The notes under the pieces are model-generated. The model saw only the letters and a list, made by a program, of their open reading frames with translations. It was not told the DNA's origin and did not search any database. Positions 1 to 64,000 of a stretch of 64,000 nucleotides of DNA are shown one piece after another (within the stretch, counting starts at the first letter, position 1; each line of letters opens with the position of its first letter). The stretch lies in the sequence record PV231353.1. One strand, written 5' to 3'. The translations under genes were made by a program, and so were the position numbers.

Positions 1-144
1 TGGATGGTCCCGACCTATCACGACATGCCCAGCCTCGACCTGATGCTCAGGCACGTCACCTTCCGCTGCCTGGACGTCAAGTCGGCCGCCTACTACGTCG
101 CCGACCTGATGAAGGAGTTCTGGGCCGAGGGCTCGCCGCGATGA
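1..144 (+). CDS. 3' end of hypothetical protein (partial)
   Basis: Frame 1 open from base 1 (WMVPTYHDMP...EGSPR*), GC3-rich codons, TGA overlaps next ATG. Confidence 0.7.
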   Translation, partial: WMVPTYHDMPSLDLMLRHVTFRCLDVKSAAYYVADLMKEFWAEGSPR

Positions 145-443
145 GCGACCACGACGCCTGCCTGACCAACTGGGTCCTCTGCGACGCGCCCGGCGGCGGG
201 CTGGTGGTGATCGGCGAAATCATGGCCGACAAGCGCGGGCGCTGGCCGGACGGGCGGCTCATCCACACCTCGCTCCTCCAGGTCAAGGCCGAGGCGGTGG
301 CGCCGGGCGCGGTGGTCGCCACGCTCAACTCCCGCTACATCCTGGGGCGCAAGGCCGAGGAGATCACCGTCCGGCACTTCGTCGGGGCGATGCTCGCCCG
401 CGTCGCGATCAGACCGCTTGACAACACTCTCGCGCCAACATAG
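141..443 (+). CDS. hypothetical phage protein
   Basis: ATGA coupling; W..L...IIGEI..D.RGRWPDG..IHTS pattern. Confidence 0.75.
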   Translation: MSDHDACLTNWVLCDAPGGGLVVIGEIMADKRGRWPDGRLIHTSLLQVKAEAVAPGAVVATLNSRYILGRKAEEITVRHFVGAMLARVAIRPLDNTLAPT

Positions 444-1999: not shown

Positions 2000-2375
2000 A
2001 TGCGCAAGCCCAAGAAGACCGAGCAGGCCTATATCGTGTCGGGGACGTGGCCGTTTCCGACCGACATGCTGCGCTACGACGACGCCCGCCCGGCGACGGA
2101 GGGCGACGCCAACCTGATCAAGGCTCTGGAGAGCGAGGACCCTCGCTTTCGGACCTGCGCAACCGCGTCCAGATCAAGCTGATCCGCCCGGCCAACGGCC
2201 TGCCCGCCGTCAAGCGCTGGGAGTCCTTCCTCTGGAAGGTCGTGGGCGGCGACGAGGAGATCGCGGCGGACGTGGCGTGGCGCGAGGCCCTGGATAACCG
2301 CGACGCCCTGCGCAAGTCCGGCCTCGCCAAGCTGACCCCGCCGAGCGCGCCGCGCTCAATCTCGACATCCGCTAG
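2000..2375 (+). CDS. hypothetical protein (two apparent sequence-error frameshifts)
   Basis: AGGAGG SD; coding frame shifts near 2150 and 2340 (FP.DMLRYD ... DLRNRVQIKL ... LNLDIR*). Confidence 0.65.
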
Positions 2376-18003: not shown

Positions 18004-20731
18004 GCTACTATCCGATCGAGGACCGCGCCAAGGCCCGGTCCGTCGTCAAGAACCTGCTGGACCTTCAGCGCGAGGCGGTCAAGGCCTCGCGCGGCGGCCT
18101 GATCCTGCCGCCCGACCAGAAGGCGATCATCACCCAGGTCACCGAGACCGAGGACCCGGCCCGCTGGGTCGACCTCCTGGGTCAGTTCGCCGATCGCGTC
18201 CAGACCGATCACCTCGCCCGGCTCAAGCCCCTGGCCAAGCACGACTTCAACGCCTTCTGCGAATACGTCAACCCCGAGGAGGCCCCGGCCTCCAAGTGGC
18301 ACGTCTACCTGACCTCGCTCCTCCAGGAGATCGAGAACAACCACGAGCTTGAGCGCTTCGTGCTCAACTGCCCGCCCGGTCACGCCAAGCCGCTCGACGT
18401 CGACACCGAGGTCCTGATGGCCGACGGGTCCTGGAAGCGCCTGGGCGACATCGAGGTCGGCGAATACGTGGTCGGCGAGAGCGGCGCGCGCTGCAAGGTC
18501 ACCGCCGTCCACGAGCAGGGCGAGCTTGCCACCCTGAAGATCACCACCGCCCACGGCCGCCAGATCATCGCCGCCCCCGATCACGCCTTCCGGGTCGGAA
18601 ACACCTGGAAGGAGGCGGGCAAGCTGCGGCCGGGCGATGCGCTGTCCGTGGTCGGCGCCGCCAACCTCAACTACGACGCCAGCGGCAAGACCATCGACCA
18701 CTTCGAGCTTGCCGCCTACCTCCAGGCCAAGGGCGGACGCTCCTACTTCCACCGCATCCACAAGAGCGGGCCGAAGACCTACCGCAACGTCTTCCTGTGG
18801 ACCTCCGACCACCGCGAGGCCAGCAAGATCAGCGCCTGCCTCAAGCGCCTGGGGATCGCCTTCAAGGGGCGCCTCGCCAAGCACGAGCAGGTCTGGAAGA
18901 TGCGGCTCGCCACCGAATGGGGCGACGCCCTGGCCGAGGAGTACGGCCTGGACGCGCGGATCGACGCGCGCCGGGTTCCGGCCTTTGTCACGAAAGGCGA
19001 CGAGGAGCAGATCGCCCGCTACCTGTCGACCTACACCTCTCTGGCCGGCGAGGCGCCCGACCGCTACACCATCCCGCGCATCATTCTCTACTTCAAGAAC
19101 CCGGCCTTCGCCCGCGACATCCAGCGCCTGTTCGCCGTGGTCGGCGTCAACGCCCGCATCGAGGGGCGCAAGACCGGCCGCACCCGGCTGATCCTGTCGG
19201 GGCCGGACCTGGAGGCCTACTTCGCCGCCGGCCTGACCTACACCGGCCCCAACGCCGACAAGCTCGACGACAAGCGCGCGGCCTTCCCGACCTCGCCCTC
19301 GCTCCTGGCCGACACCGTCACCTGGATCGAGCCGCACGGCGTGCGCCCCTGCCGCTGCCTGACCGTCGAGGACGAGCACACCTTCATCGCCGAAGGCGTG
19401 GTGGTCCACAACTCGACCTACGCCTCGCGCCTGTTCGTGGCGTGGCGCCTGGGGCGCGATCCGCGCCAGAAGATCATCGGCGGCGGCCACTCCCAGCGCT
19501 TCGTCGAGAACGAGTTCTCCGGCAAGATCTGCAACCTCGTGCGCACCCCGCAATATCGCGACGTCTTCCCCGACGTGGTCATCGACCACGCCACCTCGGC
19601 CAAGGACATGTGGGCGATCGCCGGGCACGGCGGGCAGTACGCCGCCAAGGGCGCCGGGCAGGCCATCCACGGTCTGCGCGCCCACTTCGTCTGCGTCGAC
19701 GACCCCTACCGGTCGATCGAAGTGGCCGAGTCCGCGATCGAGCGCGAGAAGATCAAGACGTGGTTCTTTGGTGACGTTGGCTCGCGTTTGTTGCCGCTCG
19801 CCAAAGTATTCCTCATCATGACGCGCTTCCACGAGGAAGATTTGACCGGGGAGATCATCAAACTCAACCAAGAAGTTCTCACCGGCGCCGACCGTTATCA
19901 CATCGTTGAAGCGCCCGCCCTGTGCTACGACCCCGAGAACGACGTCCTGGGCAGGGCTCTGGGCGAAGTTTTGTGGGACTACTATGACTTGCATTATTTC
20001 AAGCGCAAGCGGTCCGAGTGGAAGTACCAAAGATTTGCTTTGGTTTATCAACAACTTGCCGACGCGGCCTCGGACACCTCCATCGCGTCCAAGTTTCAGA
20101 CCTACGATCACCTCCCCCACCTGGAGCCGAAGGTGCTCAAGGCCCGGCTTGACGCGGGTCACGCCGACGAGCGCGGGCGGCCGATTCCGGACCGCAAGGA
20201 GCACTTCCGCCGGGTGGTGGTGAGCGTCGACTCGGCCAACAAGCCGGGGGCGCGGAACGACTACAGCGTGGCCCAGGTCTGGGGGAGACCCACGCTCGCA
20301 AGCACTACCTGATCTACCAGGAGCGCAAGAAGGTCGACATCACCGGCCTGACCGAGATGATCGAGCGGATCGCCAAGCGCTACGAGGTCGACGCCATCCT
20401 GGTCGAAGACAAGGGCAACGGCACCGCCTACATCCAGGCGCGGGGCCAGACCGACAGCCAGCGCCGGCTTGCCCCGGCCCCGATCGAGGCGATCCAGGTC
20501 CCGAGCACCTATTCCAAGGAGTTCCGCTTCAACGAGATCGTCCCGATGATCGAGGCCGGCGAGGTCTTCCTGCCGGGCAAGGCCCCGTGGCTCGACCTGC
20601 TGATCCGCGAAATCGGTCAGTTCCCCGAAGGCGCCCATGACGACCAAGTCGACGCCATGACGCAGTACCTCCGCTGGGCCAAGTCCAAGCGCACGCGGTT
20701 CGGCGCGCGCAAGGTCGGCTCGATGGGCTGA
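18000..20731 (+). CDS. terL: terminase large subunit with intein (apparent frameshift in G-run near 20285)
   Basis: Walker A PPGHAK|ST split by intein; IHGLRAHFVCVDDP Walker B; MTRFHEEDL; nuclease domain SVDSA...VEDKGNG...HDDQVDAMTQ. Confidence 0.95.
18390..19412 (+). mobile_element. 341-aa intein, class-3 type, with degenerate LAGLIDADG region
   Basis: PLDVDTEVLMADG...; block B DHAF; block F CRCLTV; ends VVVHN|S. Confidence 0.9.
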
Positions 20732-38935: not shown

Positions 38936-39690
38936 CTACTCCTTGAGGTAGCCGGCGGCGATCGCCTCGGCCCTGGTGTCGGCTTTGCTCAGGACCGAAT
39001 AGCCCCGCGCCTGGATGAAACGGACGTCCTCGTAAAGCTGGACCTCCAGCTTGCCGTCGAGCGCGATGCGCCCCAGCCTGACGGGCGAGGCCACGAATGG
39101 CGCCGGCTCGCCGTCCTTCCAGACGTTGACCTCGACCTCGCCGCGATCGGCCGTCGCCACCACCAGCGAGGCGTGGCCCCCGATCCAGTTGGGGTTCCAG
39201 ATTTCCAGCCACATCGTGTCGCCGCCCGCGCCGGCGTCGGCCAAGCGGCGCGCCAGCGTCAGGGCGTAGTCCTCGCAGTCGCCGCAGAAGGCGTTCTCGG
39301 CCCAGAAATCGCCCTTCTGGTACATCGTGCGGTCAGAAGTGTACTGAAAAGTGCTTCTGAGCGCCTTGTCTTGCTCAAAAACCTCCGAAAATGTCAATTT
39401 TCGACCCTTTCTGACCTCGCAGAGGGGATTTTTGGCCCATTTTTCGCAGAAAATCCGCAGATCGGGGATCGCCACCGCCACTTCGCCGCCATAATCGGGC
39501 GTTTCGCCTCCCGAGCCGCTGGATTTGGGGTCGGCGGGGCATTGGTGGTCGACGGCGGCCGGCGCGGTGACGAACGGGAGGTCCTGGCCCGGCGCGGCGA
39601 GGAAAGAGCGTTCCAGGCGAACCAGCCCAGGCCGCCAAACAGGATCGTTGCGATCGCGACGACGACAAGCCAGAAACGCATGATCGACAC
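38936..39690 (-). CDS. membrane-anchored transglutaminase-like cysteine proteinase (BTLCP/LapG-like); apparent frameshift near 39600
   Basis: FQYTSD...DFW...GDCEDYAL...GHASLVV; N-terminal TM in ORF 39394-39690. Confidence 0.75.
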
Positions 39691-39745
39691 CCCTTAAGTG
39701 TCATTAACCATGACACAAGATGTCGTGAATCGCAACATTCGCGCA

Positions 39746-39918
39746 TAAGAAGAGCCCCGCCTGTCGTGATTCCAGGCGGGGCTCGTGCTGCTTAGGAGAA
39801 ACAGAAGAGAAGAGGTCGATCCCTGGGTGGCGGATCAACCTCTCGACAGTTTACTTGAGCATACGGGTCTCCTTCCTTGGTCTGGTCTGTCTGGCGGCCT
39901 TGAACGGCCCCTTGTGAA
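39746..39918 (-). ncRNA. candidate ~170-nt sRNA/leader with minigene
   Basis: Promoter TTGACG-N17-TAGCTT (39953-39925), SD + ATG CTC AAG TAA, 11-bp hairpin, 12-bp terminator. Confidence 0.55.
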
Positions 39919-39982
39919 GATTTGAAGCTAAACCGGCAACGAAACGGCGTCAAGACCTAAATGTGCTGATTCACGACTTAGA

Positions 39983-40016
39983 ATGTCGTGAATCTTGACA
40001 ACCGGGCGTTAACCAT
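39983..40016 (+). promoter_or_regulatory. late-type promoter motif with CtrA half-site
   Basis: ATGTCGTGAATCTTGACA, then TTAACCAT at 40009. Confidence 0.7.
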
Positions 40017-40108
40017 GCCATTTTCCCGCCTACCTGCCCCACCGGTAGGGCCTCCAACGTCAACTTGGGGAGGATGCGTGCGTCCTCCCCTCCTTCTCCG
40101 GGCGCCGC

Positions 40109-42010
40109 ATGGCCGGTCGAACGCCGAACTCCCTGAACATCTCGCGGGTCGCCCGCGCGACCTCGCAGGCCATCTATCTGGTCACCCATCCCGAGTACCA
40201 GCACTGGCGCTCGGAGTGGACCAAGCTGCGTGACGTCCTGGCGGGTCAGCGCGAGATCAAGCGCAAGGGCGAGGCCTACCTGCCGGCCATGAAGGGCGCC
40301 GACAAGGACGACTACAAAATCTACCTGGAGCGGGCGACCTTCTTCAACATGCTCGCCCAGACGCGCGATGGCATGACCGGCATGGTCTTCCGCCGCGATC
40401 CGTCGATCAAGAACCTGCCGCCCAAGTTCAAGGACGCCGTGCGGCGCTTCGCCAAGGACGGCTCCTCCCACGCCACCTTCGCCAAGGCGGTCCTGTCGGA
40501 CCAGTCGGGCATTGGCCGCTACGGCGTCTTGGTCGACGTCACCGATTCCCCGGTCCGCAACGCCCAACCGTCGAGCTTCGCGGTCGGCTACGCGGCCGAG
40601 AACATCCTCGACTGGGACGAGGTGGTCGACACCGCTGGCTTCTATGTCCCCAGCCGCGTCCTGCTGCGCGAATTCGTCCGCGACCTGCGCTGGAAGAGCG
40701 ACATCGAGCCCCTGACCACCGCCCAAGGCCCGCAAGGCGCGCGCCGAGGCCCTGGCCTCCGGCTCCTCGTCCAGCCCCTGGTGCGCCAGACCGCCCGCAC
40801 CCTGGGCGGCTACAGCTACATCACCGTCTACCGGGAACTGAAGCTCGAAGAGATCGAGTGGCCGTCCGGCGAGGTCAAGCCCGCCTACGTCCAGTACCTC
40901 TACGAAGAAGACCCCGAGTCGACGCCGATCGCCCGCCTCGTTCCCAATGTCCGGGGCGAGCCGCTCGACTTCATCCCCTTCAAGTTCTTCGGCGCCTCGG
41001 GCAACACCGCCGACGTCGAAAAGCCGCCGCTGCTCGACATCTGCGACCTCAACCTGTCGCACTACCGCACCTACGCCGAACTCGAATACGGCCGCCTGTT
41101 CACCGCCCTGCCGGTCTATTACGCGCCGGGCACCGACAGCGAGGGCACCGGCGAATACCACATCGGCCCGAACATGGTCTGGGAAGTCCCGCAAGGCTCC
41201 GAGCCGGGCATCCTGGAGTACACCGGCCAGGGCCTGAAGGCCCTCGAAACCGCCCTCAACGACAAGGAGCGGCAAATCGCCGCGATCGGCGGCCGGATGA
41301 TGCCCGGCGCCTCCAAGTCGGTGTCGGAGAGCAACAACCAGACGACTCTTCGCGAGGCCAACGAGCAATCGCTGCTCCTCAACATCATCCAGGCCTGTGA
41401 GGCGGGGATGACCGACGTCGTCCGCTGGTGGCTGATGTGGCGCGACGTCCCGCTGGCCGAGACCGAAAACCTGCGCTACGAGATCAACACCGACTTCCTG
41501 TCGACGCCGATCGGCGCGCGCGAGATGCGGGCGATCCAGCTTATGGCCAACGACGGCCTGCTGCCCGACCCGGTTTTCTACGATTACATGCGCAAGGCCG
41601 AGGTCATCTCCTCGGACATGACCTTCGAGGAGTTCCAGGAACTGCGCGCCGATCCGGATTCGTTCATCAACAACCCGGACGCCCAGGCCCGCCAGCGCGG
41701 CTTCACCAACCGCAGCCAGGAACTCGAACAGACCCGCATGGCGCGCGAGGCCGACTTCACCCAGCAGAAGATCGACATCCAGGAGCGCGCCGTCGCCGTC
41801 CAGGAAGGTCATGCCGAAGTCGCCCACGCCGTCGGTTCGACCTCGGTCTCGGCCTCGCGCAAGCTGGGCGATCCCGAGCAGGCCAAGCCGGCGCAGGCCG
41901 AGGCCGCCCAGATCGCCAACCAGCGCCGTCAGATCAACAACGCCGCCGCCCCGCCGGCGGCCCCTGGCGCGCCGCCCGCTCCCGCCCCGAACCCGAGGAC
42001 CGCCCGATGA
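40109..42010 (+). CDS. portal protein
   Basis: HPEY...W...RD..AG...YL.RA.F.NM...T..G..G..FR, DUF4055-like phage portal; compensating +1/-1 indels near 40726-40780. Confidence 0.85.
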   Translation: MAGRTPNSLNISRVARATSQAIYLVTHPEYQHWRSEWTKLRDVLAGQREIKRKGEAYLPAMKGADKDDYKIYLERATFFNMLAQTRDGMTGMVFRRDPSIKNLPPKFKDAVRRFAKDGSSHATFAKAVLSDQSGIGRYGVLVDVTDSPVRNAQPSSFAVGYAAENILDWDEVVDTAGFYVPSRVLLREFVRDLRWKSDIEPLTTAQGPQGARRGPGLRLLVQPLVRQTARTLGGYSYITVYRELKLEEIEWPSGEVKPAYVQYLYEEDPESTPIARLVPNVRGEPLDFIPFKFFGASGNTADVEKPPLLDICDLNLSHYRTYAELEYGRLFTALPVYYAPGTDSEGTGEYHIGPNMVWEVPQGSEPGILEYTGQGLKALETALNDKERQIAAIGGRMMPGASKSVSESNNQTTLREANEQSLLLNIIQACEAGMTDVVRWWLMWRDVPLAETENLRYEINTDFLSTPIGAREMRAIQLMANDGLLPDPVFYDYMRKAEVISSDMTFEEFQELRADPDSFINNPDAQARQRGFTNRSQELEQTRMAREADFTQQKIDIQERAVAVQEGHAEVAHAVGSTSVSASRKLGDPEQAKPAQAEAAQIANQRRQINNAAAPPAAPGAPPAPAPNPRTAR

Positions 42011-58004: not shown

Positions 58005-58077
58005 GCCCTAAGTCACGATCCTCTGAGATCGTGACTTAGTCCGCCTCCTCGTCTCCGCCGCCTCAAGGGTCTTCGCG

Positions 58078-61000
58078 TTGGTCGATATCGTCGCCGGCAC
58101 GCCTGTGTCCGTCTCCTATTCGGGGGCGTCGACGACCTATGTCGCGGCGGAAACGGGCCAGATGACCGTCCACCTGTGGGGCGGCGCGGGCGCGGGCGGC
58201 TACTATTCCAACGGCGCGGGCGCCGCCAACAAGTACGGCGGCGCGGGCGGCTACGCCACGCTCTCCTTCCTGGTCAAGCAAGGCGATGTCCTGACGATCG
58301 AGGTCGGCCAGGGCGGGCAGGTCGCCACGGGCTCGGGCACCACGGCGACGGCGGGCGGCGCGGGCGGCTGGCCCGATGGTGGCTATGGCGGCAAGTCGAC
58401 CAACGCCTATATCGGCTTTGGCGGCGGCGGCGGCTCGACCCGCCTCTACCGCAACGGCGAACTGATCGGAGTCGCGGGCGGCGGCGGCGGCGCGACCGGT
58501 CTCTATAACGGCGGCAATGGCGGCGGTGTTGCCGGCTTGGCCTCGGCCGACGCCAACTCCGGCGCGGGCGGCACCCAGAGCGCGGGGGGCACGGCGGGTA
58601 CGGGCACCCTGGCGATCCAGACCGGCCTTGGGTTCCAAGGCGGTCGCGGCGGCACGACCGCCTCGACCGCCCATGCCTATGCTGGCGGCGGCGGCGGCGG
58701 CGGCCTTTACGGCGGGGCCTCCAACGGCGGCGGCTCGCTGGGCGGCGGCTCGGGCGGCGGCGGCTCGGGCTACATCAACCAGAACCTCCTCTACACCGGA
58801 CGCCTCCAGGCGGCGCGGGCTGATACGAACGGCGTGCCGTTCGATGTCGCCGGCATCCGTCCTGCCGGGGTCGCCGAGGGCGGCACGGGACCGACGGTCG
58901 CGAGCACCGGCTGGGGCTCGATCACGCCGGGCGGTGACGGTTTCGCCTATCTGTCCCTGACCTCCGTGGCTTCGGCGACGGCCTTCCCGACCTCGGGCAC
59001 GACCACGCTCGCCTATAGCGGCGCGCGGCAGGTCTACACCGTCACCCAGCTTTCCACGGTCGACATCGAGATGTGGGGCGCGGGTGGTGGCGGCGGCTTC
59101 TACACCACCGGCGGCGCTTCGCCGCGCTACGGCGGCGCGGGCGGCTATACCAAGTTCACCAAGGTCTTGTTCCCCGGTGATCTCGTCGAGATCGAGGTGG
59201 GTCAGGGCGGGCAGGCCCCGGACGGGGTTGGCGGCAATATCGGCGGCGCGGGCGGCTGGCCCAATGGCGGGGACGCGGGACGTCCGTCCGCTAACGTCAA
59301 TGCCTATATGGGCGGCGGCGGCGGCTCGACCAACATCTACGTCAACGGGCGGCTGCTGGGCGTGGCCTCGGGCGGCGGCGGCGGGACCGGCTTCCTGAAC
59401 GGCGGCAACGGCGGTGGCAAGTGGGGCCTCGCCGACGCCAATGGCGCGTCCGGCACGGCCGCCACCTGGGCGCGGGACAACAGCACCAGCACGGGTCTGG
59501 CGCGTGGCTTCCTGCTGCGCGGCGGCCACGGCTCGCCGAACGAAACCCGTGACATCGCCCACGCCAATGCGGGCGCGGGCGGCGGCGGCGGTTACTGGGG
59601 CGGCGGCGGCGCGCGGGGCAGTGTCGGCGGCGGCGGCGGCGGCTGCGGCTACATCAACGGCGACCTGACCTGGAATCGCGATTATCAGTGGGGCACCCAA
59701 GGCACCGGCCAGCCTTACACCGGCGGCGCCTATGCGTCTGGCGTGGGCGTGGGGGGCACGTGCGGCACCAGCGCCGGCACCACGACCAATGGCGGCGACG
59801 GCCAGATCGTCTTCACCGTCACGGCCGCCAGCACCACGACCCTGCCGTCCGACAAGAACGCCCTTACCTATAGTGGCGTGGTCCAGCACTATGTCGTCCC
59901 GGCCGCTGGCGTCATCGATCTGAAGATGTGGGGCTCGGGCGGCGGCTCGGCGGTGCGTTCCACTGGCACGCCAGCGCGGGGCGGCGGTGGCGGCTGCACG
60001 CAGGTCCCCTTCATCCCGATCAAGCCGGGCGATATCGTCACGTTCGCCGTGGGGCAAGGCGGCCGAGGCGCGGTCGACGCCAACTCCATCTCGCCCGGCG
60101 GCTGGCCCAACGGGGGCTATTCGGGTCCGTCGGCCTCGGCCGGCGGCGGCGGCGCCAGCCTGTGCTACCTCAATGGCGAACTGGTCGCGGTCGCCGGCTC
60201 GGGCGCGGGCGCGGGCATCTCCAACGGCGGGTTCGCCGGCGGCGCGGCCTCGTGCGATCCCGGCTACGCCAACTTCACCTCCCACGGGGGCACCCAGACC
60301 ACGGCGGGCTGGTGCCCCACGCGCGTCCTCGAAGGCACCACCTACGGCACCTACATGCTGGGCGGCGATGGCCAGATCGACGGCGTCGCTCCCGACAACG
60401 TCAACGTCAATACCGGCGGCGGCGGCGGCGGCGGCTACTATGGCGGCGGCGGCAACGCCACCAACTCCAGCCGCTATTGGGGCGGCGGTGGCGGCTCGGG
60501 CTACATCAACCCGAAGTTCGCCGGCGCCATCACCGGCTCGACCAGCGTCAACGCCGCCAACAACACCGATCCCGACTATGTCGCGGGCGTCGGCGTCGCG
60601 GGCGTCGGCTCGACGACCTATAACAACCCCGTCACCAATGGCGGCGATGGCCGGATCGTCTTCACCTATGATATCCCGCCCAATCTGGTCGAAAGCCTGA
60701 CCACGGCGGTGCCGGTCGACGGTACGGTCAAGACCTATATCGTTGGCGCCGACGGCGATCTTGTCCTCGATCTGTGGGGCGGCGGCGGCGGCGCCGCCAC
60801 CATGTTGGCCGGCGGTGGCAGCGAACGTGGTGGTGGCGGCGGCTATGTCGGCGGTACCTACCCGGTCACCGCCGGGCAGGTCATCCGGTTCTATAATGGT
60901 CGCGGCGGCGGCGGTGGGGTCTATACCAGCGGCACGGCCACGACCCTGGTCGGGACGGGTGGTCCTGGCGGCTGGCCCGACGGTGGTCCTGGCGGTTATT

Positions 61001-64000
61001 ACGCTGGTGCGGTGAGCCCGGCTCAGAACGGCATCCTGGCGGGCGCTGGCGGTGGCTCGTCGCGGGTCTATGTCGACGATCAACTGATCCTGGTGGCTGG
61101 TGGTGGAGGCGGCGGCGGTGACGGGGGGACTACCCGCACGCCGGGCGGCGGCGGCGGCCTGACGGGTGGAGATTCCGATGCGCCGTCGGGGCGTAACTTT
61201 GGCGCCACGCAAATTAGAGGGGGCTATAATAGTAACCGACCGACTGATCAAACGTCGTCTGGTGGGCTGCTGCGTGGCGGCTCGGGCTTTGCTACTGGTG
61301 CTTCGAATAGCACCAGCAGCGCCTCGGCAGGCGGTGGCGGCGGCGGCGGCCTGTTTGGTGGCGCTGGTTCTGGTAACTCGGTCATCTTCATTGGCGGCTC
61401 TGGCGGCTCGGCCTTCATCTACGACGGTCTGACGGTCGCGAAGAGCGATCCTTTCCGCGCCGAGGTCATCGCCCAGATGACCTTTGAAAGCGGCGGGGTC
61501 ATTGACGATGGCCGGCTCCGTGAAATCTTGCCGGTCGATACTGCACCGACGGCTGTCACCACTTCGCCCAAGTACGGTACCTATTGTGGCAACTACCCCG
61601 GTAGCGGCCATACTACCATGTTCGTGCCGGCCTTCGGCTTGCAGAATTTCACGATCGAAGCTTGGTTCAACCCACCCTCGCTGAGCAATGGCGTGCTGTT
61701 CGCCTACGGCAACGGTGGTGTCGGCGGGTTTACGCTGCACTATGCGGGCACGACGCTCTACCTGCGTCACAATGGTGACGCGGCGACCGATGTGACCTGG
61801 GCCGACACGGGGCGCACCGCCAACGTCTGGGCGCACTATGCTGTCGTGCGCGACATGGCGGGCACCCGCGTCTACAAGGATGGCCGGCTGGTCATTACCT
61901 ATGTCAACTCGATCGGCACGAGCTTCACCGCCACCCAACTGACCCTGGCCAACTACACCGGGGCTGCGGGCGCCAGCACGCGCTTCACCGGTCGGATCGA
62001 CGAGTTCCGCGCCACCCTCGGCGCGGCGCGTTATGTCAAGCCGTTCACCCCGGCGTCGTTCGCGGCGACGTCCCCGGCGGTTCCGACGTTGACGTCCACC
62101 GTCCAGGCCCCGCAGGGCTCGTCGGGTAACGCAGCCAACAACACCGCTACGAATTATATCGCCGGACGCGGCGTCGGCGCCCAGACGCGTCTCACGGCGG
62201 GCACCGCTCCGTCGGGCGGCGACGGTCAGATCAGTTATTTCATCGCCACCTCCACGGTCTCGGCGTCCGGGCCGATCGGCACGGTCACGGTCTCGGGCCT
62301 GACCGACGCCGCCGCCGGCGCCTTCTACCCCCTCCCGCCCGTGGGCTCGGTCGTCGTCGAGCCCTATACGGGCGCGCGCGTCAACTACGAGGTCACCGAG
62401 CCCGGCGGCGCGCGGATCAAGGTCGAGATGTGGGGCGGCGGCGGCGGCGGCAGTTCGGCCAATAACACCCTGACCACCAACGGCGGCGGCGGCGGCGGGT
62501 ACACCGTCATCGAACTCGATCTCGTCCAGGGCGACCGGATCACCGTCCAGACGCCGTCGGGCGGCGCGGGCGGCGTCAACGCCGGCAGTGGTTCGGCGAT
62601 CAACCTCGGCGGCTACCCCGACGGCGGCGATGGTTATCGTCCGGCCCTCACGGCGCTCAACTGCGGCGGCGGCGGCTCGGCGCGCCTGTGGGCGCAAGGC
62701 AATCTGGCGGCGGTCGCCGGCGGCGGCGGCGGCGCGGCCTATGGCGGCGGCGGCTATGACTTCCCTGGCGGCGCGGGCGGCGGCAACCTCGGCGGCCCTG
62801 GCGCCTATGACGGCGTCAACGCCACCTTCCCCAATGGCGGCGGCACCCAGATCGCCGGCGGCGTCGGCACGGCCAATGGCTTCAACGGTGCCTCGCTGCA
62901 AGGCGGGCATGGCGGTGTCGTTTCGGGCGTCGCCAACAACGGCTGCGGCGGCGGCGGAGGTTATTACGGCGGCGGCGGCGGCGGCGCCTACAAATCTGGC
63001 GGCGGCGGCTCGGGCTACGTCAACACCGGCCTGCCGGGCTACCGCACGGGCTCGACCACGGGTGGCTCTGGCAACCTGCCGGCCGGCATGTCCTCGCCCA
63101 ACTATGTCTCGGGCATCGGCGTCGGCTCGAACGGCAAGGGCGGGGCGTTCACCAACGGCGGCAACGGCCGTATCGTCATCTCGGTCATCACCCCGACCCC
63201 CGGCAATGCCTCAGGTACGATCGGCACTGTTGACGTCTCGGGCCTGGACAACTTCGGCCTGCTGATTGGTGTCCCGACGGGTGACATCGGGACGATCGAT
63301 GTCGTCGTTCCGGTGGGGCAGTCGGGCCAGCCGGGCTTTGCCGAAGGTCCGCTGACCACCATTGGCGTGGGTCCGCCGGAAACGATTCCCCAGGCCCAGG
63401 CCGTCGTCATCGTTCCGATCAACGATCAGACCTCGATCCTGATCGAGCCGCCGATCAACGCGCCGCTGGAGGTTCCTGGCGAGGGCATTGGCGAGCTTCC
63501 GACGATCGTCGTCACGGGATTTGAGTCCAGCCTCGAAGCGGGCGCGACTTTCGACGCCACCGATCTCGGGACGATCCTCCTCGTCGCTCCTGAGGCCGAT
63601 GCGGTCGAGATTCCGCCGGTCGAAACCAGCGGCGCCATCGGCACGGTCATCGTCACCGCGCCCGAGGCGTCGACCCAGGTCATTCCGCCGGTGGAGACCA
63701 GCGGCGACATCGGCACCATCACCGTTGTGACGGTGACGGGCGCGGCGTCGTGGAACAACGATGTCTCGACCAGCGGCGACATCGGCACGATCGTCGTCAC
63801 CTCGCCGGAGGCCGATGCCGTTGGCGACGATCTGGCCACGGGGGACCTCGGCACGATCATCGTGACCGCGCCCGAAGGCGTCGCACATCAGGACGCCAAT
63901 GTTTCGAGTGACATCGGCACCATCTCGGTCTATCCGATCGAGGGTGGCCAGCCTGCCGACGTGGTCGGTGATGTTCCTTATATTCAGGTCGTCACGCCGG
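58078..64000 (+). CDS. giant glycine-rich fibre/adhesin protein (partial, >1,970 aa)
   Basis: TTG 58078; five (L/M)WG.GGGG Gly-rich domains, a LamG/ConA-like domain (about 61500-62040), C-terminal GDIGTIxVxxPE repeats; absent from the track because it runs off the window. Confidence 0.85.
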   Translation, partial: MVDIVAGTPVSVSYSGASTTYVAAETGQMTVHLWGGAGAGGYYSNGAGAANKYGGAGGYATLSFLVKQGDVLTIEVGQGGQVATGSGTTATAGGAGGWPDGGYGGKSTNAYIGFGGGGGSTRLYRNGELIGVAGGGGGATGLYNGGNGGGVAGLASADANSGAGGTQSAGGTAGTGTLAIQTGLGFQGGRGGTTASTAHAYAGGGGGGGLYGGASNGGGSLGGGSGGGGSGYINQNLLYTGRLQAARADTNGVPFDVAGIRPAGVAEGGTGPTVASTGWGSITPGGDGFAYLSLTSVASATAFPTSGTTTLAYSGARQVYTVTQLSTVDIEMWGAGGGGGFYTTGGASPRYGGAGGYTKFTKVLFPGDLVEIEVGQGGQAPDGVGGNIGGAGGWPNGGDAGRPSANVNAYMGGGGGSTNIYVNGRLLGVASGGGGGTGFLNGGNGGGKWGLADANGASGTAATWARDNSTSTGLARGFLLRGGHGSPNETRDIAHANAGAGGGGGYWGGGGARGSVGGGGGGCGYINGDLTWNRDYQWGTQGTGQPYTGGAYASGVGVGGTCGTSAGTTTNGGDGQIVFTVTAASTTTLPSDKNALTYSGVVQHYVVPAAGVIDLKMWGSGGGSAVRSTGTPARGGGGGCTQVPFIPIKPGDIVTFAVGQGGRGAVDANSISPGGWPNGGYSGPSASAGGGGASLCYLNGELVAVAGSGAGAGISNGGFAGGAASCDPGYANFTSHGGTQTTAGWCPTRVLEGTTYGTYMLGGDGQIDGVAPDNVNVNTGGGGGGGYYGGGGNATNSSRYWGGGGGSGYINPKFAGAITGSTSVNAANNTDPDYVAGVGVAGVGSTTYNNPVTNGGDGRIVFTYDIPPNLVESLTTAVPVDGTVKTYIVGADGDLVLDLWGGGGGAATMLAGGGSERGGGGGYVGGTYPVTAGQVIRFYNGRGGGGGVYTSGTATTLVGTGGPGGWPDGGPGGYYAGAVSPAQNGILAGAGGGSSRVYVDDQLILVAGGGGGGGDGGTTRTPGGGGGLTGGDSDAPSGRNFGATQIRGGYNSNRPTDQTSSGGLLRGGSGFATGASNSTSSASAGGGGGGGLFGGAGSGNSVIFIGGSGGSAFIYDGLTVAKSDPFRAEVIAQMTFESGGVIDDGRLREILPVDTAPTAVTTSPKYGTYCGNYPGSGHTTMFVPAFGLQNFTIEAWFNPPSLSNGVLFAYGNGGVGGFTLHYAGTTLYLRHNGDAATDVTWADTGRTANVWAHYAVVRDMAGTRVYKDGRLVITYVNSIGTSFTATQLTLANYTGAAGASTRFTGRIDEFRATLGAARYVKPFTPASFAATSPAVPTLTSTVQAPQGSSGNAANNTATNYIAGRGVGAQTRLTAGTAPSGGDGQISYFIATSTVSASGPIGTVTVSGLTDAAAGAFYPLPPVGSVVVEPYTGARVNYEVTEPGGARIKVEMWGGGGGGSSANNTLTTNGGGGGGYTVIELDLVQGDRITVQTPSGGAGGVNAGSGSAINLGGYPDGGDGYRPALTALNCGGGGSARLWAQGNLAAVAGGGGGAAYGGGGYDFPGGAGGGNLGGPGAYDGVNATFPNGGGTQIAGGVGTANGFNGASLQGGHGGVVSGVANNGCGGGGGYYGGGGGGAYKSGGGGSGYVNTGLPGYRTGSTTGGSGNLPAGMSSPNYVSGIGVGSNGKGGAFTNGGNGRIVISVITPTPGNASGTIGTVDVSGLDNFGLLIGVPTGDIGTIDVVVPVGQSGQPGFAEGPLTTIGVGPPETIPQAQAVVIVPINDQTSILIEPPINAPLEVPGEGIGELPTIVVTGFESSLEAGATFDATDLGTILLVAPEADAVEIPPVETSGAIGTVIVTAPEASTQVIPPVETSGDIGTITVVTVTGAASWNNDVSTSGDIGTIVVTSPEADAVGDDLATGDLGTIIVTAPEGVAHQDANVSSDIGTISVYPIEGGQPADVVGDVPYIQVVTP

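Follow-up and report, generated by a model that had tools for sequence, protein, structure and literature searches.

A predicted small RNA with a conserved, very short open reading frame diverges from the portal operon of phiCbK-like phages

The spacer upstream of the portal gene of Caulobacter phage RBC57 contained a candidate stand-alone small-RNA gene of the phiCbK-like phages, in which a Shine-Dalgarno (SD) sequence, an AUG and a very short open reading frame (ORF) are, by sequence comparison, the most conserved features of the locus. The function under selection may be the engagement of ribosomes on an ORF without product, rather than a peptide or the control of a protease, a reading that is held tentatively and with slightly less than even confidence. 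A preliminary description of this DNA had proposed a minus-strand RNA carrying a minigene, and the locus is best read as a discrete small-RNA gene of this kind, with a genuine minigene. The RNA is presumably both made and translated.

The analyzed window (64,000 nt; PV231353.1) belonged to RBC57, which is a member of the Dolichocephalovirinae and phiCbK-like. Across 3 kb surrounding the site, the sequence was 100% identical to the deposited RBC57 record, 97-98% identical to phiCbK, Karma, Magneto, Swift and Ccr phages, 86% identical to BL57 and ~80% identical to the Rogue/BL10 group. [quoted passage not shown] In these phages, Rfam had given no RNA elements except tRNAs (Gill et al. 2012). Rfam at gathering thresholds returned no match across the whole window, ARAGORN detected neither tRNA nor tmRNA within it, and literature searches found no description of this small RNA. 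The features of the locus, in window coordinates, were the following:

39948-39953, minus strand: -35 hexamer TTGACG, read directly
39925-39930, minus strand: predicted -10 hexamer TAGCTT, with a 17-nt spacer
39745-39918, minus strand: predicted RNA of ~174 nt, its 5' end placed from the promoter, about 7 nt after TAGCTT, and its 3' end from the T-tract of the terminator, equivalent to ~19213-19386 of phiCbK NC_019405
39893-39911, minus strand: 5' stem-loop with a GGCC/GGCC core and the conserved UUCACA 5' end before the stem, based on the fold and on relatives
39869-39878, minus strand: SD sequence AAGGAAGGAG, 6 nt before the ATG
39851-39862, minus strand: minigene ATG CTC AAG TAA (Met-Leu-Lys-stop), read directly
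39810-39844, minus strand: middle hairpin of 13 bp in the minimum-free-energy fold, with a 9-nt loop containing ACCCAG at 39828-39823
39794-39799, minus strand: anti-SD-like pyrimidine tract UCUCCU, able to pair with the AGGAGA of the SD (-8.9 kcal/mol)
39745-39784, minus strand: predicted intrinsic terminator with perfect 12-bp GC-rich arms (39784-39773 and 39763-39752), a 9-nt loop and a T-rich tail (39751-39745)
39968-40000, plus strand: inverted repeat GATTCACGAC-N7-GTCGTGAATC, abutting the TTGACA of the portal-operon promoter
40067-40111, plus strand: portal leader hairpin (40067-40090), pyrimidine tract, and portal ATG (40109) without SD

The promoter, SD, minigene and terminator of the preliminary description were all found by direct reading at these minus-strand positions. 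The putative promoter, TTGACG-N17-TAGCTT, fit the sigma-70-type consensus at 8/12 positions, under the threshold of a generic promoter/terminator scanner, which called neither this site nor the terminator with its 9-nt loop. Among the homologs, TTGAC(A/G) occurred at an equal distance in 17/17, followed in most lineages by TAnnnT after a spacer of 16-17 nt. The predicted terminator combined a GC-rich hairpin and a U-tract with conserved pairing, as 9 of its 11 consensus pairs showed compensatory changes across 16 homologs. The tail after the stem was TCTTCTTAT, a U-tract broken by a C, and the wobble pairs together with the T-tract suited the minus strand only. A late-motif half-site had been reported in the terminator loop; the loop did contain GAATCACGAC, with one mismatch to the repeated GATTCACGAC motif, but a motif of this kind was kept in the closest relatives only. 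Homologous RNAs had predicted lengths of 153-194 nt, with one uncertain homolog of 120 nt. Four RNA-seq runs from 2023 with a phiCbK-like phage consisted of assembled contigs of 20-28 kb, with a flat depth from which no ends were readable.

The region upstream of the portal gene was compared with that of each other lineage with a related portal, comprising Shapirovirus, BL57, Poindextervirus, Bajun, Colossusvirus, Bertelyvirus, three Brevundimonas jumbo phages and two metagenome contigs. In all the cultured lineages compared, as well as in both metagenome contigs, the strand divergent from the portal gene carried an SD followed by a tiny ORF, as follows:

RBC57, phiCbK and BL10: ATG CTC AAG TAA (MLK)
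BL57 and Rogue: ATG AAG TAG (MK)
Bajun: ATG TTG CGT TGA (MLR)
Colossus and CcrPW: ATG CGC GCT TAG (MRA)
Bertelyvirus C2, CcrSC and BL9: ATG AAG TAA or TGA (MK)
Kabachok and Kikimora: ATG AAG TGA (MK)
Bambus: ATG TGA (bare start-stop)
Metagenome contig L026: ATG AAG TAG (MK)
Metagenome contig L025: ATG CAC ACC TAA (MHT)

MK was the peptide in most lineages. Literal start-stops were found in Bambus and possibly in an IMG/VR contig (locus L011, GTG TAG); the RBC57 minigene has two sense codons after the AUG and is thus not one of them. A GGAG or GAGG core preceded every tiny ORF, and the ORF was ≤4 codons throughout, with variable stop codon, peptide and flanks. Differences in ORF length were whole-codon, with CTC present or missing and Bambus 3 nt shorter than Kabachok. 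In the alignment of close relatives (A1), GGAAGGAGACC and the ATG were invariant and the ORF content varied; across 12 aligned leaders, the GGAG core was shared, with two columns invariant and two nearly so.

The homologs had a common architecture: a promoter of the form TTGAC(A/G)-N16-17-TAnnnT (usually), a 35-64-nt leader with a UUCACA-like start and a small hairpin, a GGAG-core SD 5-8 nt upstream of the start codon, one or two middle hairpins, and a GC-rich terminator with a T-tract. Promoter spacing, leader length and RNA length varied little among them. This module persisted down to ~47% portal-protein identity, across host genera and changed gene neighbours. A strict search for the whole module (promoter, SD, ORF ≤4 codons and terminator) in ~1.03 Mb, representing both strands of all loci compared and including distant portal loci, gave matches at this position only; neither the distant portal loci nor the remaining parts of the compared loci had any. 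A covariance model of the 5' half recovered the known members (CcrSC weakly) but no further copy in the window, and more distant portal loci gave no match. Among metagenomic portal relatives, a clear minigene was lacking in L027 (SD without start codon) and in L028 and L060 (no module), and L029 had a GTG just 3 nt after the GGAG. The 20-nt ribosome-binding pattern was also searched in 185,579 bacterial genomes and viral contigs. Outside these phages it preceded ordinary ORFs, of 61-394 codons in 13/14 cases, which, like the persistent shortness of the phage ORF and its whole-codon length changes, suggests that translation is under selection. The bacterial matches all belonged to unrelated organisms, none of them Caulobacter or Brevundimonas, and a host origin was discarded.

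It is very improbable that an SD-like run, an ATG and a stop merely coincide here in an intergenic region rich in promoters, or that the element begins a longer protein gene missed so far. Taken as a single sequence, the RBC57 minigene is not above chance, because SD sequences followed by an ORF of ≤3 codons occurred three times in the window compared to 1.75 ± 1.4 expected from Markov-1 simulated sequences. The observation is nevertheless far above chance because the whole module was conserved across ~8 lineages with unalignable flanks; a per-codon stop probability of 0.031 gives ~5e-9 as the likelihood that all eight would by chance have a stop at codon 2, 3 or 4. As to a longer gene, ORFs have been annotated in the spacer of Rogue (gp045), BL57 (BL57_044c) and CcrBL9 (gp081), but they lie in different frames and places and overlap the promoter, and no ORF of at least 25 codons ran across the minigene in BL57 or C2. 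A longer ORF, or one joined by a frameshift, was rejected, as no ORF of at least 25 codons was shared and the frames differed among phages. Between Kabachok and Bambus, in the frame overlapping the stop codon, all six differences (6/6) altered the amino acid or created a stop. Neither a conserved ORF nor a coding substitution pattern indicative of a protein-coding gene was thus apparent in the sequences. The proposal that the minigene is not part of a longer ORF withstood this check, with no conserved longer ORF in relatives and only whole-codon indels.

The gene downstream of the terminator differed between genera. In phiCbK and Colossus it encoded a BTLCP peptidase (Pfam Peptidase_C93), in Rogue, BL10 and Bajun it was annotated as a BTLCP-type peptidase, and in Bertelyvirus it encoded a YqeY-like protein. 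In the Brevundimonas phages Kabachok, Bambus and Kikimora, the neighbour was a convergent gene for a trypsin-like peptidase, and 4-20 nt separated its end from that of the RNA. Folds were also computed by thermodynamic modelling under a ribosome-footprint constraint, in which the segment from 15 nt upstream of the AUG to ~10 nt past the stop was held single-stranded. The terminator stem was kept in 17/17 homologs (all pairs in 13 and at least 11 in each), and no alternative antiterminator was found in these 17 homologs.

These results bear on the suggestion of an attenuator gating the protease, in other words a cis-acting leader in which occupancy of the tiny ORF would set terminator read-through into the gene that follows on the minus strand, which in phiCbK-like phages encodes the BTLCP peptidase. 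Very short upstream ORFs are known to control antibiotic-sensing leaders. A co-oriented gene did follow the terminator in Shapiro-, Poindexter-, Colossus- and Bertelyvirus and in Bajun, after a short run of further terminated units in Colossus and Bajun, and in C2 and CcrSC only ~45-50 nt separated the terminator from the next start codon, without an obvious promoter. However, the downstream genes are unrelated (Peptidase_C93 versus YqeY-like), the phiCbK-like phages have a separate promoter-type motif between the terminator and the peptidase start, and in the modelled folds nothing competed with the terminator under the ribosome footprint in any of the 17 homologs. Moreover, the RNA of Kabachok, Bambus and Kikimora retained the SD and the tiny ORF despite the convergent neighbour, so that the small RNA was retained where nothing lies downstream to regulate. 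Of the two features expected of an attenuator, an antiterminator was not found in the modelled folds and a conserved co-oriented gene was not found downstream. The RNA is probably not a leader, because the downstream gene is unconserved or convergent and the terminator persists under the footprint, and this role is considered improbable. For the same reasons, the invariant neighbour is the portal-operon promoter and not the protease.

If the RNA instead serves to engage ribosomes on a product-less ORF, host RNA polymerase would start it at the predicted sigma-70-type promoter, back to back with the portal-operon promoter, and the predicted intrinsic terminator would end it after about 155-195 nt. 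The core functional element would be the strong SD, the AUG, 0-3 sense codons (AUG-AAG-stop in most lineages) and the stop. A 70S ribosome would be recruited, make at most fMet-Leu-Lys and depart 3-12 nt past the start, so that, owing to the short ORF and early exit, the structured 3' half and the terminator would never be unwound. Repeated futile cycles of initiation and of termination or drop-off would follow, as on lambda bar minigenes and at bacterial start-stop sites. Such engagement may provide a ribosome or peptidyl-tRNA sink, a ribosome-gated RNA conformation, or drag beside the portal promoter. A more specific version, in which the RNA is dedicated to capturing ribosomes on its ORF of 1-4 codons and its occupancy, or the flux of fMet-Lys-tRNA, serves to absorb or to sense the translational capacity of the host, is rather doubtful. 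It would make the element a minigene kept by natural selection, whereas lambda bar may be incidental, and could include a link to the switch-on of the portal operon, for example through ribosome-gated exposure of the ACCCAG loop or anti-SD tract.

A tax on tRNA-Lys, as first suggested for the minigene, lost weight. AAG was the major Lys codon of the phage (97 AAG and 10 AAA in six large ORFs), and the last sense codon encoded Lys, Arg, Ala or Thr or was missing, depending on the lineage, with four lineages lacking a final Lys. Since AAG is common and not all variants end in Lys, such a tax is unlikely. Lys as the second codon, found in 8/12 lineages, may favour initiation.

The RNA was predicted to be structured on both sides of the minigene. 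For the 5' hairpin, two-sided changes were observed at 4/5 consensus pairs, in an imperfect alignment, and relatives had a hairpin at the equivalent place. The middle hairpin is complete only on the minus strand, because its U-G and G-U wobbles become mismatches on the plus strand; the strand-specific pairing noted in the preliminary description was therefore right, but the stem measured 13 bp in the minimum-free-energy fold rather than 11. Close relatives also had a hairpin at this middle position, with a different stem sequence. The motif ACCCAG was present and predicted unpaired in 13/17 homologs, compared to an expectation of ~0.08 occurrences per RNA. Its position varied: RBC57 has it in the middle hairpin, Colossus, L025 and L026 have it in the loop of the terminator, and Bajun and C2 have it just upstream of the SD. 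Its conservation is not accounted for by ribosome loading alone and suggests that the ACCCAG loop is recognised by something.

A pyrimidine tract equivalent to that of RBC57 paired with the SD at -11 to -19 kcal/mol in Rogue, BL10, Colossus and CcrPW. In Kabachok and Bambus the SD-pairing tract was located upstream, and in the remaining lineages an anti-SD-like tract was absent or elsewhere. In predicted folds, the SD is not especially open because this tract can pair with it: its unpaired probability was 0.21-0.66 versus ~0.40 for the remaining RNA, and it was paired in the best fold of Bajun, Colossus and Kabachok. An open SD was accordingly dropped as supporting evidence, accessibility not being consistently above that of the rest of the RNA. 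The modelled folds suggest that the RNA can be either closed, its SD being paired, or bound by a ribosome.

The exposed ACCCAG loop and the anti-SD tract, separately or together, would also suit a trans-acting regulatory small RNA working by base pairing or protein binding, an alternative that is possible though on balance unlikely. The SD, AUG and stop would then be auxiliary, serving to gate conformation, to stabilise the RNA, or to halt ribosomes on an unavoidable SD-like sequence. Beyond the frequency of unpaired ACCCAG, this alternative draws on the SD/anti-SD pairing predicted for several lineages (-9 to -19 kcal/mol), along with a CUCC(C)UGUAGCAGCA tract that is conserved in part, and on a weak resemblance of the 3' half to the anti-SD-type sRNA NmsRb, the best Rfam match below the gathering threshold (26.9 bits versus 52). 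It is also in line with the suggestion that an immediate stop may neutralise an unwanted start site (Meydan et al., 10.1101/520783). An unwanted start would, however, be most easily lost by mutation of the AUG, yet the AUG was found at optimal spacing in nearly all lineages, and indels were in frame. Furthermore, neither the pyrimidine tract nor ACCCAG was universal, as BL57 and CcrSC/BL9 lacked one or both. Trans pairing with the portal leader was not retained, as duplex energies between the small RNA and portal leaders showed no preference for the cognate (-72.9 versus -70.9 kcal/mol), which, given the crude whole-molecule method, is weak negative evidence.

On the other side of the locus, the portal-operon promoter stood back to back with that of the small RNA. 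The 16-mer GTCGTGAATCTTGACA occurred in six copies in the window, all on the plus strand, compared to 0.02 expected. The portal start was assigned to the ATG at 40109 because the N-terminus MAG..N..N.I.R was invariant in eight distant portals, and nearly all lineages had a GC hairpin and a T-rich tract 8-30 nt upstream of the portal start. CcrPW has four inserted genes that separate the RNA from the portal gene, and there too the RNA faced away from the operon start. The divergence from the portal promoter, already pointed out in the preliminary description, was thus confirmed and is the sole invariant neighbourhood.

This arrangement is what would be expected if the element acted at the level of DNA or transcription on the adjacent late operon, through a strong divergent promoter and early ribosome loading, with the RNA as a by-product; drag together with upstream negative supercoiling, or insulation of the portal operon from read-through, would be the possible forms of such action. 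In addition to the back-to-back placement, kept even in CcrPW, the element was the lone minus-strand one among plus-strand genes in the Brevundimonas phages, and Gill et al. (PMC3556154) had termed the place a divergent transcription site. The conserved RNA hairpins, the ACCCAG loop motif and the strict limit on ORF length would nevertheless be left unexplained, and this alternative is judged quite improbable, slightly more so than the leader.

Ribosome engagement on a product-less ORF, the preferred reading, has counterparts among known systems. The lambda barI and barII minigenes are AUG-AUA-stop, with a rare codon read by a scarce tRNA, and are toxic only with limiting peptidyl-tRNA hydrolase (Pth). 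The layout of the RBC57 minigene is of the same type, being phage-encoded with an SD-like sequence, an AUG, one or two sense codons (0-3 in relatives) and a stop, with no functional protein possible, and by analogy a short peptidyl-tRNA and slow termination would be expected. In contrast to the rare bar codon, the RBC57-type RNAs use the common AAG, another codon or none, and judging from codon usage the RBC57 minigene probably does not end in a scarce-tRNA codon. They also differ from bar in forming their own promoter-to-terminator unit, with conserved structure and apparent purifying selection throughout the subfamily. The mechanism of minigenes is treated in PMC2490762.

Start-stop sites that bind ribosomes without product have been described in Escherichia coli yecJ and hslR (Meydan et al., 10.1101/520783). 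They resemble the phage element as minimal SD-bearing ORFs, and the Bambus homolog is a literal ATG-TGA; unlike it, the E. coli sites are intragenic and adjust the ORF that contains them by ~16%, whereas the phage element is carried on a dedicated small RNA and mostly has one to three sense codons. In Sinorhizobium meliloti leaders, 'sitting turtle' ribosomes occupy upstream ribosome-binding sites with little or no product (PMC13285730). The host is likewise alphaproteobacterial and, by analogy, an SD and start codon would hold a 70S ribosome and act by occupancy. The S. meliloti sites, however, occlude a main ribosome-binding site 3-25 nt away, whereas the phage RNA has no main ORF within reach, because of the intervening terminator and of a downstream gene that varies or is missing.

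Antibiotic-sensing leader attenuators, known from Term-seq, likewise join a strong SD, a tiny ORF and a downstream intrinsic terminator in one transcript, but the phage RNAs showed no antiterminator and no conserved regulated gene, and three phages were without a co-oriented gene. A natural minigene has been proposed as a regulatory element of the axe-txe toxin-antitoxin operon; it reportedly affects translation (PMC8708949) of the adjacent toxin cistron inside the operon and is not a free-standing small RNA. The lambda 6S and oop RNAs and anti-SD small RNAs are also small transcripts running from a promoter to an intrinsic terminator, but are not known to carry a conserved SD-AUG-stop minigene. 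The 3' half of the phage RNA bears a pyrimidine-rich tract.

To our knowledge, whether minigenes are selected for their own sake has been open since lambda bar, the known cases being incidental or intragenic fine-tuners. Minigenes and start-stop sites themselves are already known. An ORF of two to four codons kept as its surroundings diverged is about the clearest possible comparative signature of selected product-less translation. phiCbK and Caulobacter are genetically tractable, and RNA-seq time courses as well as methods of ribosome profiling are already available for them. Should the RNA function by engaging ribosomes, it would represent a new phage route to the host translation apparatus; if it is a ribosome-gated riboregulator, it would represent a new small-RNA design. 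Either way, the phage group would gain a non-coding gene family, where Gill et al. (2012) had reported tRNAs only.

In Colossus, two more small promoter-to-terminator units lay directly after the minigene RNA (the predicted minus-strand small RNA with a Shine-Dalgarno (SD) site and Met-Leu-Lys-stop), between it and the BTLCP peptidase gene, and consisted of TTGACA/TTGACG-N17-TAnnnN, about 80 nt and a terminator. CcrPW possessed the same extra units at least in part, its locus ending there, and Bajun at least one further terminated unit:

L007 (Colossus locus) ~2130-2290, minus strand: extra terminated units
L017 (CcrPW locus) ~81-190, minus strand: extra terminated units
L006 (Bajun locus) ~2150-2280, minus strand: extra terminated unit(s)

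The SD-minigene was present in none of the extra units of Colossus, CcrPW or Bajun. Given these additional units, predicted from sequence, the region around the minigene RNA would be a small-RNA island.

Two other SD and tiny-ORF matches were found in the window, both inside a 1615-aa minus-strand ORF (58063..62910), a number that agrees with chance:

58775, minus strand: SD with ATG TAG
62243, minus strand: SD with ATG AAA TAA

In Bertelyvirus, the gene coming after the minigene RNA encoded a YqeY-like protein with a GatB/YqeY domain, which is linked to tRNA-dependent enzymes; its location beside a translation-related RNA may be a coincidence.

L018 1329-2084, minus strand: YqeY-like gene
L019 1273-2058, minus strand: YqeY-like gene

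Upstream of the peptidase gene, the motif GTCGTGA(A/T)TC occurred twice in the same orientation, 41 nt apart, with one copy within the terminator loop of the minigene RNA. The pair was restricted to the closest relatives (RBC57, phiCbK, BL57 and partly BL10), and was absent from Rogue and other genera.

39722-39731, plus-strand coordinates: GTCGTGA(A/T)TC
39763-39772, plus-strand coordinates: GTCGTGA(A/T)TC

The RBC57 peptidase gene itself (Pfam Peptidase_C93; homolog of phiCbK gp041) was frameshifted at ~39600, and the record annotates only the 3' piece:

39394..39681, minus strand: peptidase ORF piece
38936..39481, minus strand: peptidase ORF piece

Directly after codon 27, a C-run was one base short (CTTTCCTC in RBC57 vs CTTTCCCTC in phiCbK), and the extra base was present in RNA-seq contigs of a phiCbK-like phage. 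The frameshift means that the gene is truly a pseudogene or that the assembly contains a homopolymer error.

On the plus strand, the 16-mer GTCGTGAATCTTGACA was repeated six times in the window (0.02 expected; one copy with two mismatches), every copy lying upstream of a plus-strand gene, the portal gene among them:

14711, 39985, 42959, 46036, 51005, 53749, all plus strand: GTCGTGAATCTTGACA

These sites look like a phage-specific promoter class. A GANTC (CcrM methylation) site within the 16-mer adjoined the -35. GcrA-like proteins occur in phiCbK-like phages and not in Colossus (Gill et al., PMC3556154); the GTCGTGAATC part of the motif was absent from the Colossus portal promoter region. A second repeat, GTTAACCA, had seven copies in the window (0.35 expected), four of them 7-30 nt downstream of TTGACA in the repeated promoter motif; upstream of the peptidase gene there is a near-copy (CATGGTTAAT):

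14750 (minus), 20740, 24083, 31606, 40008, 43005, 46081, minus where marked: GTTAACCA

This repeat includes TTAACCAT, a half-site of the CtrA box, and late genes might accordingly use the host cell-cycle regulator.

Finally, the portal start codon lacked an SD site, both in the window (40067-40108, plus strand) and at the equivalent place in the relatives' loci. In nearly every lineage, a GC-rich hairpin with a T- or pyrimidine-rich tract behind it lay 8-30 nt upstream of the start; the hairpin was absent from metagenome contig L025.

40067-40108, plus strand: portal leader hairpin and tract
Equivalent place in portal loci L003-L007, L011, L014-L016, L018, L019 and L026: the same

This arrangement has the form of an intrinsic terminator within the portal leader, and it points to antitermination or attenuation as a possible control of the structural operon.
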